Shown: in pieces, positions 18,051-24,770 of the stretch | How positions within the stretch are numbered: the first letter of the stretch is position 1 | Layout of the letters: each line of letters begins with the position of its first letter | DNA from: Selaginella moellendorffii | Lineage: Eukaryota; Plantae; Lycopodiophyta | Length of the DNA stretch: 64,000 nt | Reading direction: 5' to 3' | Assembly (NCBI RefSeq): GCF_000143415.4 | Contig: NW_003314318.1 | Location: forward strand, 930,001-994,000 | Notes under the pieces: model-generated | The model's input: the letters and a program-made list of their open reading frames with translations, nothing else | What the model was told of the DNA's origin: nothing | The model's database searches: none | Position numbers and translations under genes: made by a program

Positions 18051-19274
18051 ATGGCGAGGTTGAAAAGAGCAGATTTGCGTGAGGCCGTGATGCAAATCGA
18101 GCAGCAGCGATGCGATCCGGATGGAGATCTCTGCGCGTTTCTCTTGCGGCAGTGCGGATCCAAGGCGCTGCTCGAGGGGCGGCGAATCCATTCCGTGCTC
18201 GCCGATCATGGCATGGATTCACAGGCCCTGTTGGGCAATCTCCTCGTTCACATGTACACCAAATGCGAGAGGTTTCAGGAAGCTGGAGCGATGCAATGTC
18301 TTCTCGTGGAATAACATGATCGTCGCCCGCCGGCATGGTGGATTCGGCGAGAGATCGAGAGCACGCCACAGAGATCTGCGGTCAACGATGATCCAAGCGT
18401 ATACTTGAAACGGGCATATGGATTGCTGCCTCTGGCTTTTAGACAGGATTGCCACGCGATCTCGACCACGCCATCGATTTCTTCCTCACAGGGATCACAT
18501 GAACGTCCTGATAAACGCTTTTGTGCGGAGCGGGCAAGAGGATCGCGCGGGACTTGTGTTTGAGAGGATGGCACAGCAAAGCGTTCTCTCCTGGAACATT
18601 GCTATCCAAGGCTATGCTCTAAAGGGCATCTGGAAGAGGTCAAAACGCTGTCCGATCGAATGCCCGAAGAAGACGTTGTGGCTGGAAACGGGAGGATCGG
18701 CACATATGCCCAGCATGGGCATCTAGGTGAAGCGATTGCGGTGTTTGATCCCATGGAGCAGTGCAATGTTATCACTTCCACTTCGATGATGGTGGCGTTA
18801 ATTCACGGTGGCGAGCACGATCGAGCTCGGTGGTTCTTCGATTCCCTGGCAGAGAAGAGCGTCGTGACTTGGAACTCTATGATCCACGCTGATGTCCAAG
18901 CCGGGCATATGGACCACGCGAGCAAACTCTTTCACGAGATACCCGTGCTCTCTTGCAACGCCGGCTATGACCTTTCGTGCGACGCCAAGAGCGCCCTCCA
19001 GATCTTCGAGAGAATGCCGCAGCGAGGAACTTCGTCTGGCAACGCAATGTTTCGAGCATTCGCCCAGAACGGTGCTCGAGAGATCTTCCACTCGTTCATG
19101 CGACACCGCGACGTCGTCTCCTGGAACATCGCGATTGCGTCTTATGCCCAGAGCAGCGACAATCGCCCTTTTCGGCAAGATCCTGTCCAGGAGCGTTGTC
19201 ACCTGGAAAGGCTGGCGAAATGCACAGGTAAGATGCTTTCTTCCTTGTGTTCGTTTCTAGATTTCTATGGATGA
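18051..19274 (+). pseudogene. PLS-class PPR pseudogene
   Basis: LLRQCGSKALLEGRRIH...LGNLLVHMYTKC, NVFSWNNMI, SVLSWNIAI and RDVVSWNIAI fall in different frames with stops. Confidence 0.85.
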
Positions 19275-19310: not shown

Positions 19311-20113
19311 CGGAGATTTTCAGCGGGTATGGCTTGCTGGACGTTGTGTTCTCAAGCTTTTCTATGATTATTGTCAGCGAGGTAACGTTTGCTCTTCCCG
19401 GAACTCTCCGTTGCTAATGCTTGCTGCTTTAGGCCTGATGCGTGCTCCTCTGGTAGATTGGAGACGAGACTTTCATCATCGCAGCTCTAATGGCGATGAG
19501 GCATCCGCGAGCCATAGTTCTTTCTGGAGCTCTCACCGTGCTTGCTCTCATGACTGTAAGTTCTCGTAAGCTTTCTTTCCTGTTTACTCAGGTGCTTTTA
19601 TTCTTTTGCTAACAGGTTTTCTGCACCGTTCTTGGAAGAATCTTATCTCACGAAGGCACATCAATAGTTTTGCCACTGGTATGGATTTCTCTTCGTTCCT
19701 TTCTTTTCCTCAGTTTTTCCTTGTTGCAGTGTTGTATACTTTCTTTGGATTGCGGCTATTGTATATAGCGTGGAAGTCGGGCTATATACAAGCTTTCCTT
19801 TTTCGTTCCCGCAGGTCGAGGAGAAACTGGAAGGCAGCACGCATGGAAAGTCAAGAATCCGAAAATTTTTCTGCGCTCCAATCTTTTTGGAGGTATACTC
19901 ATTTCCAAGGTTTCATTTTCTGGCTGATCAAAATCAAGCCTTCACCTTTTTGGCGGAATGGGAGATAGAAGCCGGATCGCAACGATTGCCAGTAAGTTTA
20001 CATTTTTTTGCTTGATCCAACTTAGAAATTTCTTCCTTAGATTTCTAGCTTGCTGCTCACAAAAACGCTGTGGGATTTACGCTGGGAGCAATCGTTGGAC
20101 ACACCTTGTGTAA
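19311..20113 (+). pseudogene. GDT1/TMEM165 (UPF0016) family gene, frameshifted and truncated
   Basis: SMIIVSE|IGDETFIIAALMAMRHPR and VLYTFFGLRLLYIAWKS are present. The second motif (FLAEWGDRS) is broken by a 1-nt deletion near 19960, and similarity ends after GAIVGHTL. Confidence 0.75.
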
Positions 20114-20267
20114 TTCTGGCCATGAGAATATCACAGAGAACCGATTGTTTCTACCGTTAATTGACCAACGCACACTTTGACGGCCACGATTCTTTTACGT
20201 GTACTATCGTTTTCCCGCCCAGTCCAGGGTATTTGAGCTAGCTAGGGTTTTTCTGGATGAGTGCGCG

Positions 20268-23200
20268 ATGGAATCGCCACGGATGGATCCGGCTGCCGGG
20301 GATGTCGAAGAGATTATCAACGCATTGGATCCGAATTCGTCGGTGGAGCTGGACCTCGCGTGGCTACGCGGCGTCCTGGAGAATGTGAGTGTTTCTTGGT
20401 ATAGGCGATTCTTTTTCACAGTAGCTGTGGCCGCTCTTCAGGTCCAAATCCATAGCTTCCAGCGGCGGCACTGTGGGCGTTTGGAGGAATTGCTGACGCG
20501 GCTCCAATCTATTCAGCGTCCTGAAATTCTCGTGACTGAGGAGTTTTTCGAAGCGCTGGCGAAGCTCTATGATAATCTTGTCACTGGGGATTTCACTCGG
20601 AGGGAGGTCTTGTCGTTGAATTTGCAGCTTTTGTTTGTCATCGAAGATCTAAGCGATCATCCTCAAGGTGAGCGGTCGTATGTAGAGATGAGGCCTTAGT
20701 GATTTTCCTTTTTCTTTCGTTACACAGGCAAAGTTCTTTCTGGGAAGCACTTCATCACCAGGCTTCTTACGTTGGCTTGCGCTAAGTCGGGGTCTTTAAA
20801 ACTCAAGCGGGCTTCTGTGGAGACTCTTTGTGCCTTGATTACTCGATCGGCCGAGAACCAGAAGTTTCTGATACTTCACGTGACTGGATGGTGAGTTCGG
20901 CTATGCATTCCAGTTTACGTTTCTAACGTTTTCATGCAGCTACAAGCTTTTCAAGGTTTTTCTCCCGAAGTGTGGAGACTTCCAACTTCAAGCTAGTGCT
21001 GCGGAGATACTTTTTCGATTAACAAGGAGACACAAGAGGCTCCTGGATATAGTCGATGACGATGCTGCGAAGAGGGCAATGCTATCCATGCACGAGATGA
21101 AAAGGCCAGATGTCAAGACCGGCATTAGGAACTTCGTTAACTTGGTCAATGAGTCCCTGGGAGCATCGAGAAGGTGAGAGCAGAGTGCTGACTTTCTGAC
21201 TCACTGTGCGGATTTTTCTATGCTGTAGCGTTCATTCCTTTCGAGCCTTACAAGTTTTCATCGATGGCAACGAACATACTCCTCACGAAGAAGTATGGGT
21301 GCATATCGGAGTGGATCATATCAGCTACTACACAAACTCACCAAGCAAAGTAAGAGAGTGCAATTACAATCAAAGTTGTTTCTGAGGTCAAACTTAACAG
21401 GAGTTTGAAGGCGCTGCAGAGATAATGGATTTTGATTTTAAGAATATCAAAGAGATCAAAGGTGAGTTACACTCACAAGTACGGCTAAGCTAGCTATGAT
21501 GATTTAGTGCTCTCCTCGTCATCTTTGGAGCTCGTTATTTGGAAGCCTCAGGACGATGCTGCCGTTCCAACAAGAACTATAGCACGCTTTCGGTTTTCTT
21601 CAGAAGGTATGCGTTGGTTTATCGAATGAGCGGTTCTAAAGTCTTTTGCCTGGATGAAGATGCAAGGCTCGCTTATGAGTGCTGCAGGGCAAGGCTGTCC
21701 TCGCTAAATGCAACAGTTCCACCATCAAGTAGTCAGATTCCTTGGACGGGCAAGACATCAATAGGAATTGCGGTGCCTCTGCCAAGAATTACAGACTTCC
21801 CAATCATGTCCGGTTGCGCAGACGACAAAACTACAAGAGGTAGCGGTTTTCTCCGAGAAAGGTTTTCTTCTAAATTCTCAAGTTTCTATTTGTAGATGTA
21901 CTTGTACCAACGACTATCGACAACGTAGTACCAGGGCTTGATACGGACACTAAAGGTAGAGGTCTTTTGTAATATCCCTGTTTGGTGCCAGCGGCTGTTG
22001 ACTTACCCTTAGACAACGTGAAAGTTCCGCATTCGCCGGAGGTACCCTCTCATTCAATTCCCGATGTAGCAGAGGTTGAGGAAAAAGAAAACGTTGGCCA
22101 CCTTCGTAGCAAGTTGAAGGCTATGCTTGATGGACCAACAAAGAAAGCGATCGACAAACTCAAGGTCATCCAAGGTATCAAAGAAGTTCTGTAATACATT
22201 GGTAATTCTGTTTTTTCTTGTGGCAGAGAGAAGTCCCAGCGTGCAAAGGCAGATCCAGGCCCCGATTCACACTAGAGCACGAGGTACTACGATGCCAGCT
22301 TATTATCATTCTTTAACAGCACTATTTGCAGGTCGGCCGAGGAAGAAAGCGGCGCCTAAAACACAGAAGCCAGGTAGGCGAATCAGGTACCTATTGATAG
22401 TGCTGAATGCTTTACATTGCAGAGGAAAAGGTTTTATGTGCAGTCGAGCTATCAGAAAATGACAAACCCACCAAGCTGTTTCGTGAGAGGAAGCTTCCTC
22501 CAAGACCAACCAAAGAGGCTGCAGCACCACTTAAGCCATTGTTTAGCGCCACGAAAGAGATGATAGCAGAAGGTAACCTCTGATTATTATTCTTGACTTG
22601 TCGTTAAGGTTTCATGTGCAGTCGAGCTATCAGAAAACGATAAACCCGCCAAGCTGTTTCGTGAGAGGGAGCTTCTTCCAGCACCAAACAATGACGCTGC
22701 ACCACCGCTGGAATTTGGCAACCCATTGGTTAGCGCCACGAAAGGGATTATAGCAGAAGGTAACCTCTGATTATTATCCTCGATTTGTCGCTAAGGTTTT
22801 ATGTTCAGAATATGACAAACCCGCCAAGCTGTTTCGTGAAAGGGAGCTTCCTCCAGCACCAACCAATGACGCTGCACCACTTGAATTTGGCAAGCCATTG
22901 TTTAACGCCACGAAAGAGATGGTAGTAGAAGGTAACCTCGGAGTACTTGTCTTTAAGATCGCTAAGGTTTTATGTGCAGTCGATCTCTCAGTAAATGACA
23001 GACCCGCCAAGCTGTTTCGTGAGAGGCCAGCACCAAGCAATGACGCTGCACCACCACTTGAATTTGGCAAGCCATTGATTAGCGCCACGAAAGAGATGGT
23101 CGTAGAAGGTAATCTTGGAGTACTTGTCTTTAAGATCGCTAAGGTTTAATGTGCAGTCGAGCTCTCAGAAAATGACAGACCCGCCAAGCTGTTCCGTGAG

Positions 23201-24229
23201 AGGGAGCTTCCTCCAGCACCAAGCAATGACGCTGCACCACCAGTTGAATTTGGCAAGCCATTGTTTAGCGCCACGAAAGAGATGACAGAGATCAAGACCC
23301 GGCGGCGCAGGCGGTATACACTTGCAGAGTTGACAAGCGGCATAGAACACGTGAATTTGGCTTCAGAAACAAAGCGTCCAAAATTTGAGAAGGACAACAG
23401 TGTTACTCCAGAGTCTCCAATTTGCGATCCCTGCGATGATGATGACATGGATCGGTAAAAATTCTTTGCACCTCAGGATTTGTACTGATCGAAACTTCTT
23501 TCAGGGTCGTTGTGCTCTTTGCGAACATGCTGAACAAGTTCAAGAAGAAGTTGCAGTCTCGAGTTCGTGATAAAACTGCTCATATAATAACTTCCACCTC
23601 GGAGGCGATCAAATCGGAGGCAGCCTCTGTTGAGCTACAGATTAAGAAGGGCACGTACGTAAGCTCTTCATTTGTTGTTGGTAAGGTTGTGTAACTCCTT
23701 TAAACTACAGGGATGATTATGCTCAACAATGTAGAGACAAGCTTGGTCGGATAGAACTGGACCTGCATGGTATGTTAATGTGGAGCAAACCTGGTTTAGG
23801 CTCGCTTCTGATATCATTTTCAGAGAAAGCCAAGAGCTTCAAGAAGCTCTGTGAAGATTTTGACAACTTGTTCAAGCACCACAGCGAACAATTAGAGCAA
23901 ATCCAGACTCAGATGGAATGTACTGACGACGAACTCAACGCCTTGTCGGAAAAACGAAGTAGGCTCTTTCTCTCTGTTGCATGTTTTTACCAAACGAGTG
24001 TTTTCTTGGATCAGAGCTAACACAGAGAAAATTGATTGCGCAAATGCAAATGAGGGGCGAAGAACTTCTCAGCGAAGCAGAATCCAAGATTCTTGCCGTC
24101 CGAAAGGTTTGTTGAATGTAGCCGGTTTTAAAACTGCGAGTGTATTAACACTGCTCACAGGCTGCCAAGCACATGCAGGGCTTCAAGGAAATACTCCAGC
24201 AACTGGTAATGGACACTGTAGAGTTATAA
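20268..24229 (+). CDS. ASY3: Meiotic chromosome-axis protein, ASY3/PAIR3 ortholog with a SYCP2/Red1-type ARM-PH N-terminus
   Basis: About 20 short-intron exons. GDFQLQASAAEILFR...IRNFVNLVNESLGASRSVHSFRALQVFID...VWVHIG is SYCP2-like. SSQ...KTSIGI, LRSKL and the C-terminal coiled coil LFANMLNKFKKKLQS...QRKLIAQM...ESKILAVRK are ASY3-like. Confidence 0.78.
22444..23285 (+). repeat. Five tandem exon copies (four with their following intron; period about 175-185 bp) inside the ASY3-like gene
   Basis: Exon copies start at 22444, 22622, 22809, 22980 and 23157. The first four end GAAG|GTAA and are followed by a 48-49 nt intron ending TGTGCAG or TGTTCAG. Confidence 0.93.
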
Positions 24230-24770
24230 ATTGCGGGGTCGTTTAGCATCCGTTAATAAGAAAAAAATTGTAGTGTACTTGAAAATCTTCTTCTGAGTGT
24301 ACAAGAAAAACTCACTTGATAATCTTCTAGAGTTCATGTAAGACCCTCGCAATTGACTTTCAAAGCTCACATTTGGCAACCCAAACCATACTTCATCATA
24401 TTAATTAAATGTAATAGTCCTATACTCATCTAACCACTCTTTGTCATATCTACATCTAAATTGTTGGATTCCTCACCATGAGATCATACATTACCTAGTT
24501 GAAAGACAAACCATCAATGCACCAGAATTGCTGACAACTTTCTATTAAAAACCTACTGAGCAAACTAAGGGTGAAAACTTGAGTCGAGTGCAAAGAATTT
24601 CTATCTGCACTGTGGATTGTAGTAAATTAATAATTGAAAAATATTTTTTCTTTTAATATATTTCTTTCTTAATCTTTTCAAAGATCCTCCAAACACTACC
24701 AAATGTCATATTTATATTGCATTTATTTGCAAAATTCAAGATTTGCGTTTCTAACTTTTTTTAATAGAAG

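Follow-up and report, generated by a model that had tools for sequence, protein, structure and literature searches.

A Selaginella moellendorffii gene that very probably encodes a full-length plant meiotic axis core protein with a SYCP2-type head and an ASY3-like coiled coil

We analyzed a 64,000-nucleotide (nt) stretch of Selaginella moellendorffii DNA (contig NW_003314318.1 of assembly GCF_000143415.4, positions 930,001 to 994,000 of the forward strand; hereafter the window, in whose numbering all positions are given) for a gene with a coding region at 20268..24229 on the + strand. Spliced according to RNA joints, this gene (LOC9654595) has 22 exons and encodes a protein of 954 amino acids, in which an ARM-PH head is followed at once by a motif of the type R/K-K-x-S-I-G, a long linker and an ASY3-like helix. 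We show here that the complete protein is encoded by a single spliced mRNA; it is very probably the Selaginella orthologue of the meiotic axis core protein (SYCP2 / Red1 / ASY3) in its ancestral full-length form.

All 21 introns of the spliced model carried GT..AG ends and measured 46-60 nt, the short-intron pattern of a compact plant genome, leaving an open frame of 954 codons. The product was identical, residue for residue, to S. moellendorffii XP_024544183.1, which RefSeq labels "uncharacterized protein LOC9654595". The same species and record emerged from a cluster look-up of the 12 proteins that a HMMER search with exon 4 (77 residues) returned from a library of 1.84 billion proteins. RNA was mapped to positions 19900-24500 (4601 letters) using contigs from three runs and raw reads, in a single orientation only, from a fourth. 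Fifteen GT..AG joints were directly listed in the RNA and most of the remaining introns were bridged by contig pieces; introns 1 and 9, which had no direct RNA joint, were placed by record-length arithmetic and the RefSeq model. A 1677-nt contig extended from exon 1 past the exons of the closure motif and the LRSKL motif described below, a second contig extended from 23256 to the stop codon, and the repeat-exon region was linked by overlapping joints at 22370>22420, 22570>22620, 22757>22807, 22931>22993 and 23106>23155. The peptides quoted in a first-pass annotation of this DNA all fell into place in exons 4, 5, 8 and 10 once the gene was spliced, and its proposal that ARM-PH domains, closure motif and ASY3-like coil belong to one transcribed gene was borne out by the joints and contigs, which link the exons. 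Searched exon by exon against Pfam and the PDB, the gene gave weak hints only (ASY3-like at E 7e-4 with exon 18; SYCP2 at E 0.13 with exon 4).

The older GenBank/UniProt model of the locus (EFJ15601.1 / D8SJ34, 1069 amino acids) is contradicted by the RNA joints and by XP_024544183.1. It begins with some 130 residues that belong to the GDT1-family gene lying upstream (19457-20276), and its exons 7-8 are mis-spliced (21508-21660), with 48 PH residues replaced by a frame-shifted 31-residue stretch.

The head of the protein consists of two subdomains. The ARM-like helical subdomain (residues 8-241, exons 1-4; 20289..21156, + strand) was modelled by AlphaFold2 (AF2) as helices with a predicted local distance difference test score (pLDDT) mostly >85, and the ARM-like portion of mouse SYCP2 (PDB entry 5IWZ) aligned with it. 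The PH / Spt16M-like subdomain (residues 249-359, exons 5-8; 21233..21715, + strand) was modelled as seven strands (249-347) and a closing C-terminal helix (350-359), and was likewise aligned to 5IWZ by VIA-align. The AF2 model of the entire head reached a pLDDT of 75 and a predicted template modelling score of 0.75. The peptides GDFQLQASAAEILFR...IRNFVNLVNESLGASR and SVHSFRALQVFID...EVWVHIGVDHISYY are encoded in exon 4 (20940-21173) and exon 5 (21229-21349), respectively; the Selaginella head and SYCP2 have the motifs GDF/YxLQ, NLVN and RxVxxF in common, and the SYCP2 strings quoted in the first-pass annotation agree with the mouse 5IWZ chain (GDYELQV..., FWIDFN).

When residues 1-400 were compared by phmmer with 177,635 PDB sequences, the sole significant match was 5IWZ (E 1e-7), in an alignment of query residues 100-294 to chain residues 133-334 that crosses the ARM/PH junction. 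A profile made from ten plant and algal N-termini found the same entry at E 3e-12 (positions 46-292). The structural check that had been proposed for the N-terminus, an AF2 model searched with Foldseek, also placed SYCP2 on top: 5IWZ came first in the PDB (E 7.6e-11, template modelling (TM) score 0.57/0.61), followed by an entry with a TM score of 0.2, and VIA-align superimposed 323 residues of both subdomains (model residues 6-366) on 5IWZ with Z 24.3 and a root-mean-square deviation of 3.9 Å. In AFDB Swiss-Prot the top six matches were SYCP2/SYCP2L (E about 1e-12), next came S. pombe Rec10 (5.8e-7), and S. cerevisiae Red1, the second protein named for comparison, appeared at rank 18 (E 6.6e-4); all these matches were N-terminally aligned, and the AFDB clusters gave a picture consistent with this list. 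The head is an axis-core ARM-PH unit of SYCP2 type and not a generic repeat.

A further family bears on the annotation of the head. Precomputed annotation puts PF26290 (DUF8079) on the older model and on related fragments, whereas our local Pfam copy does not report PF26290. A weak precomputed match to this family is also attached to three short fragments that share 45-46% identity with exon 4. In the Atlas, PF26290 comprises mainly PH-like proteins of Euglenozoa, in agreement with the published link between KKT17/18 and SYCP2.

Directly behind the PH subdomain lies a candidate closure motif for HORMAD (ASY1) binding, PSSSQIPWTGKTSIGIAVPLPR (residues 362-383; 21722..21787, + strand), which starts 3 and ends 24 residues behind the last PH helix. 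It contains the peptide PSSSQ...KTSIGIAV (21722-21775, exon 8), with PSSSQ in front of G371-K-T-S-I-G-I-A-V-P-L-P-R383. An alignment of seven full-length homologues (Selaginella, Diphasiastrum, Adiantum, Calypogeia, two Riccia species and Marchantia) revealed conservation in the ARM-PH domain, in this short island right behind it and in the C-terminal coil, and in no other region, making the motif the only conserved island between PH and coil. The island follows the consensus [RK]-K-x-S-[IVM]-G-[ILFV], often continued by PLP[RK]. Scanning the seven proteins with the core SRKISIGVM of Arabidopsis ASY3 placed the best match within the island in 6/7 of them, with 0 to 187 of 1000 shuffles equalling the scores, depending on the homologue. 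These comparisons argue strongly, at the level of the family, for a closure-motif resemblance beyond chance; for the N-terminal domain and the coil, the resemblance lies far outside what chance would give.

The Selaginella motif corresponds to residues 17-25 of Arabidopsis ASY3, whose printed sequence starts MSDYRSFGSNYHPSSQSRKISIGV (PMC9957857). Both Arabidopsis strings quoted in the first-pass annotation, PSSQSRKISIGV and LRSKLWEILG, are found in print (PMC9957857; 2026 Corbett-lab preprint). Binding of the ASY1 HORMA domain was mapped to ASY3 residues 2-50, and residues 8-35 were aligned as a closure motif (West et al. 2019). The same placement, directly after the folded domain, was described for the closure motifs of SYCP2 (395-414) and Red1 (346-362) (West et al. 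2019; 2026 Corbett-lab preprint).

The protein ends in an ASY3-like coiled-coil helix (residues 782-952, exons 17-22; 23438..24220, + strand), which AF2 modelled as a single helix of 171 residues with pLDDT 89 at the extreme end of the chain, and which is the coil expected there from the letters. Its proposed kinship to ASY3 found support in Pfam: the ASY3-like family PF20435 matched the whole protein with 45.9 bits (residues 778-944, profile positions 619-786 of 793) and residues 770-954 with 50.6 bits, against a gathering score of 25.7. The match was confined to the coil part of the profile and colinear with the C-terminus. When the coil was searched in pieces, 9/9 matched ASY3-like (best E 5.8e-17), whereas every other family matched at most three pieces. 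Language-model neighbours of residues 355-954, which we treat as leads only, were SYCP2-like, SYCP3 and ASY3-like clusters. A coil profile found nothing among the PDB sequences, two homologue searches with the coil region (E <= 1e-3) returned close kin only and no seed-plant ASY3, and an alignment-based search fitted to the length window gave no match at E <= 10.

Between the closure motif and the coil, we noted a candidate cohesin (REC8)-interacting motif (CIM), LRSKLKAML (residues 451-459; 22102..22128, + strand), within the peptide HLRSKLKAML of exon 10 (22099-22128). In Arabidopsis ASY3, the CIM residues L196, L200, I203 and L204 are needed for REC8 binding, and the REC8-binding peptide EKMDKPGKETNGTTDVLRSKLWEILGK has a dissociation constant of 0.3 uM (2026 Corbett-lab preprint). 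The Selaginella stretch, L451-R-S-K-L455-K-A-M458-L459, keeps all four hydrophobic positions (L, L, M, L) as well as the LRSKL core, and it was the best match in the protein when scanned with LRSKLWEIL, at a score reached by 49/2000 shuffles (p about 0.025). The first-pass annotation had seen this resemblance to ASY3, for which the shuffles give modest support, and had not recognised it as the REC8-binding motif. Judged from sequence, LRSKLKAML is a probable cohesin-interacting motif. The fern Adiantum has a candidate, HLQEKILNIL, that alone is not significant.

The linker between these motifs and the coil is long and poorly conserved. It includes a weak AT-hook-like basic stretch with an RGRPRKK core (residues 490-501, across the exon 11/12 junction; 22271..22354, + strand), which scored 9.9 bits (E 1) with Pfam AT_hook, below the cutoff; a regular-expression scan for the GRP core found it in one other homologue only, Riccia fluitans. 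Farther downstream the disordered linker is made of five tandem exon+intron modules (residues 509-730; 22425..23284, + strand), whose repeat exons all start in phase 1. Tandem Repeats Finder resolved them with a period of 177 (3.7 copies, 83% matches) and a period of 349 (2.4 copies).

The same N-to-C architecture was present in the six non-seed land plants aligned with Selaginella. Marchantia polymorpha, part of the survey of Tromer et al. (2021), has the same order of ARM-PH, closure island, long linker and ASY3-like coil; its 1129-residue homologue could be aligned along the coil and, at 33% identity, along the N-terminal domain, and the Selaginella protein is shorter (954 residues). Selaginella differs from its non-seed-plant relatives in the five-fold exon-repeat linker and, with respect to the liverworts, in the LRSKL-type motif, which was not found in them. 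Arabidopsis ASY3 (Q0WR66) and rice PAIR3 resemble the Selaginella protein in the closure core (SRKISIGV versus GKTSIGIA), the LRSKL motif and the PF20435 coil. In contrast, Arabidopsis ASY3 has no ARM-PH domain, its closure-to-LRSKL spacing is about 175 residues compared to about 80 in Selaginella, and its printed sequence shows no tandem-repeat linker.

Mouse and human SYCP2 share the two-subdomain N-terminal fold and have their closure motif directly behind it, where Selaginella has its candidate motif. We also count as a likeness the pairing of the SYCP2 C-terminal coil with a small coiled-coil partner, which for Selaginella is only presumed. In contrast, SYCP2 has about 1500 residues and about 15-16% identity to the Selaginella head, no REC8-binding motif was detected in it in the cited work, and the searches made here gave no Pfam or PDB sequence match between the Selaginella coil and the animal SYCP2 coil. 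Red1 has the full order of ARM-PH, closure motif, cohesin-interacting motif and coil (2026 Corbett-lab preprint); the structural match of Red1/Rec10 to the Selaginella head is much weaker (TM 0.43-0.47), with no match at the sequence level, and the Red1 coil forms homotetramers without a small partner.

By analogy with yeast, mouse and Arabidopsis, the ASY1 HORMA domain would wrap around the K-T-S-I-G-I motif and thereby be recruited to the axis. The C-terminal helix would assemble with an ASY4-like partner into 2:2 tetramers, which would link up end to end to make the axis filament; no ASY4 candidate was seen within the 64,000-nt window. The ARM-PH head would add a further contact with chromatin or protein. 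To our knowledge, no binding partner of the ARM-PH head is known in any lineage.

Several points weigh against this identification. The coil was compared with seed-plant ASY3 via the Pfam profile, and the motifs via sequences printed in two papers. The sequence resemblance of the LRSKL stretch exceeds chance by a modest margin only, and in Diphasiastrum, Calypogeia, Riccia and Marchantia no LRSKL-type motif scored higher than the shuffled sequences. Allelic differences in the coding region, 7/8 of which change an amino acid (see below), fit a fast-evolving axis protein, but would also be expected under relaxed constraint. RNA depth was low and the tissue labels of the runs were coded. Finally, the RNA assemblies break at the repeated exons, so that the gene is not covered from end to end by any one contig, and its continuity is deduced from the chain of overlapping joints together with the RefSeq model.

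This last point is relevant to a chimeric origin of the protein, in which two distinct genes, one of ARM-PH and one of ASY3 type, would stand head to tail and be joined by annotation only. Genes lie close together in Selaginella, at this very locus the older GenBank model did wrongly take in part of the GDT1 gene upstream, and the repeat region lacks a single covering RNA contig. However, the 1677-nt contig already runs from exon 1 past the LRSKL exon and is followed by overlapping joints up to the stop-codon contig, the frame is open over 22/22 exons, and six other species have the same arrangement within one protein, which makes a chimera very improbable. We give a similarly slight chance to the head being a generic armadillo plus PH-like arrangement that is independent of SYCP2/Red1. 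The low identity over the structural alignment with SYCP2 would suit such an origin, as would the middling VIA-align scores of the ARM repeats with many unrelated proteins (Z 12-14, over the helical half only) and the lack of a match to SYCP2_ARLD or SYCP2_SLD for residues 1-345 in the local Pfam copy, even at E 10. Against it, sequence alone picked SYCP2 only, the sequence alignment passes through the ARM/PH junction with shared motifs, the VIA-align superposition (Z 24.3) takes in the two subdomains as they are oriented to each other, and the domain is followed by the closure motif and terminal coil, as elsewhere in the family.

A diverged paralogue with a role outside the axis, comparable to SYCP2L in vertebrate oocytes or KKT17/18 in kinetoplastid kinetochores, would imply that the true axis gene lies elsewhere. 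The mostly non-synonymous allelic differences would be in line with this explanation, but a library clustered at 50% identity yielded only one Selaginella cluster with the ARM/PH junction exon, made up of LOC9654595 and a near-identical second locus (14 residues different), and the closure motif, coil and ARM-PH core recur in conserved form in the single homologues of lycophyte, fern and liverworts. We therefore consider a non-axis paralogue unlikely and retain the identification as the axis core orthologue.

The position of the gene among plant axis proteins follows from its architecture. About 360 ARM-PH residues precede the closure motif, and the protein is therefore the ancestral long form rather than the seed-plant short form, which starts at the motif. 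In Arabidopsis ASY3, 12 residues precede the PSSQ of the closure motif and 16 precede the SRKISIG core (PMC9957857), and ASY3 has been described as having no N-terminal domain (West et al. 2019; 2026 Corbett-lab preprint). The simplest reading is thus that the entire part ahead of the motif was lost, by which seed-plant ASY3 would be a Selaginella-type protein minus that part. In West et al. (2019), the missing Red1/SYCP2-like N-terminal domain of ASY3 was called "a further mystery". Our exon-4 search returned no seed-plant protein with its one 77-residue query, though it reached a zygnematophyte alga at 39% identity, a result that, as far as sequence comparison goes, agrees with the published loss.

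The first-pass annotation had assigned the loss to angiosperms; the architecture supports the loss, and the literature places it in the Spermatophyta as a whole. Tromer et al. (2021, Open Biol 11:210049) traced SYCP2-type proteins across eukaryotes, stated that Spermatophyta ASY3 lost ARM + PH, and used Marchantia as the full-length plant example. The evolutionary inference is correct, yet already published there, so that the value of the present analysis lies in confirmation and in added detail, which comprises the coordinates of the motifs, a correction of the gene model and a likely cohesin motif. The earlier expectation that broad surveys may include such proteins holds for the full-length form and its loss; Selaginella itself goes unmentioned in the main text by Tromer et al. 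(2021), and our literature search found no paper joining SYCP2, ASY3 and Selaginella. Plant ASY3 is still described as lacking the ARM-PH head in reviews and recent structural papers. This compact, well-transcribed lycophyte gene, which has the head together with ASY3-type motifs, offers a convenient natural construct for studying the function of the head and its loss.

We tentatively extend this picture to the linker, with a confidence somewhat short of even. Selaginella, and perhaps ferns, may keep all Red1 modules in one protein with the motifs in the plant ASY3 form; if true, the cohesin-interacting motif would be older than the seed-plant loss of ARM-PH. The loss might then have been tolerated as the linker motifs already carried the cohesin and HORMAD contacts, with the lineage-specific five-fold repeat (PAKLFRER...FGKPLFSATKEM) as an added multivalent docking array.

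The gene is represented by a second locus or haplotype, XP_024532214.1, that differs from XP_024544183.1 in 14 residues. Between 21131 and 24188 the RNA contained eight coding differences, seven of them amino-acid-changing; all seven match XP_024532214.1, and both alleles are therefore expressed. Small variants of splicing and length were also seen. Intron 6 (21462-21507, 46 nt) was retained in a contig of run X2, which carries another organism label, with two base differences inside the intron, and was spliced in runs X1 and X4. Exon 6 had a 3-nt in-frame deletion at 21422 in one RNA run (X4), and those RefSeq isoforms of the second locus that have 950 residues in place of 954 may reflect similar small in-frame variants.

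Upstream of the axis gene, between it and the GDT1 gene, 17 reads of the raw-read run continued before and 15 behind a 32-nt stretch (20112-20143) into sequence from outside the window; these loose ends had no match in the window, and a transcript from elsewhere seems to have the stretch in common with this DNA. Where the upstream gene ends (3'), all reads had an extra G behind 19959 and an A for G at 19974, and a joint at 19989>20049 had non-canonical CA..AG ends with one extra letter. These irregularities (19959-20049) point to small assembly or allele differences, or to an unusual splice. Farther upstream of the GDT1 gene, at 18051-19274, open reading frames encode PPR-like repeats (SWNIAIQGYA, VVTWNSMIH).

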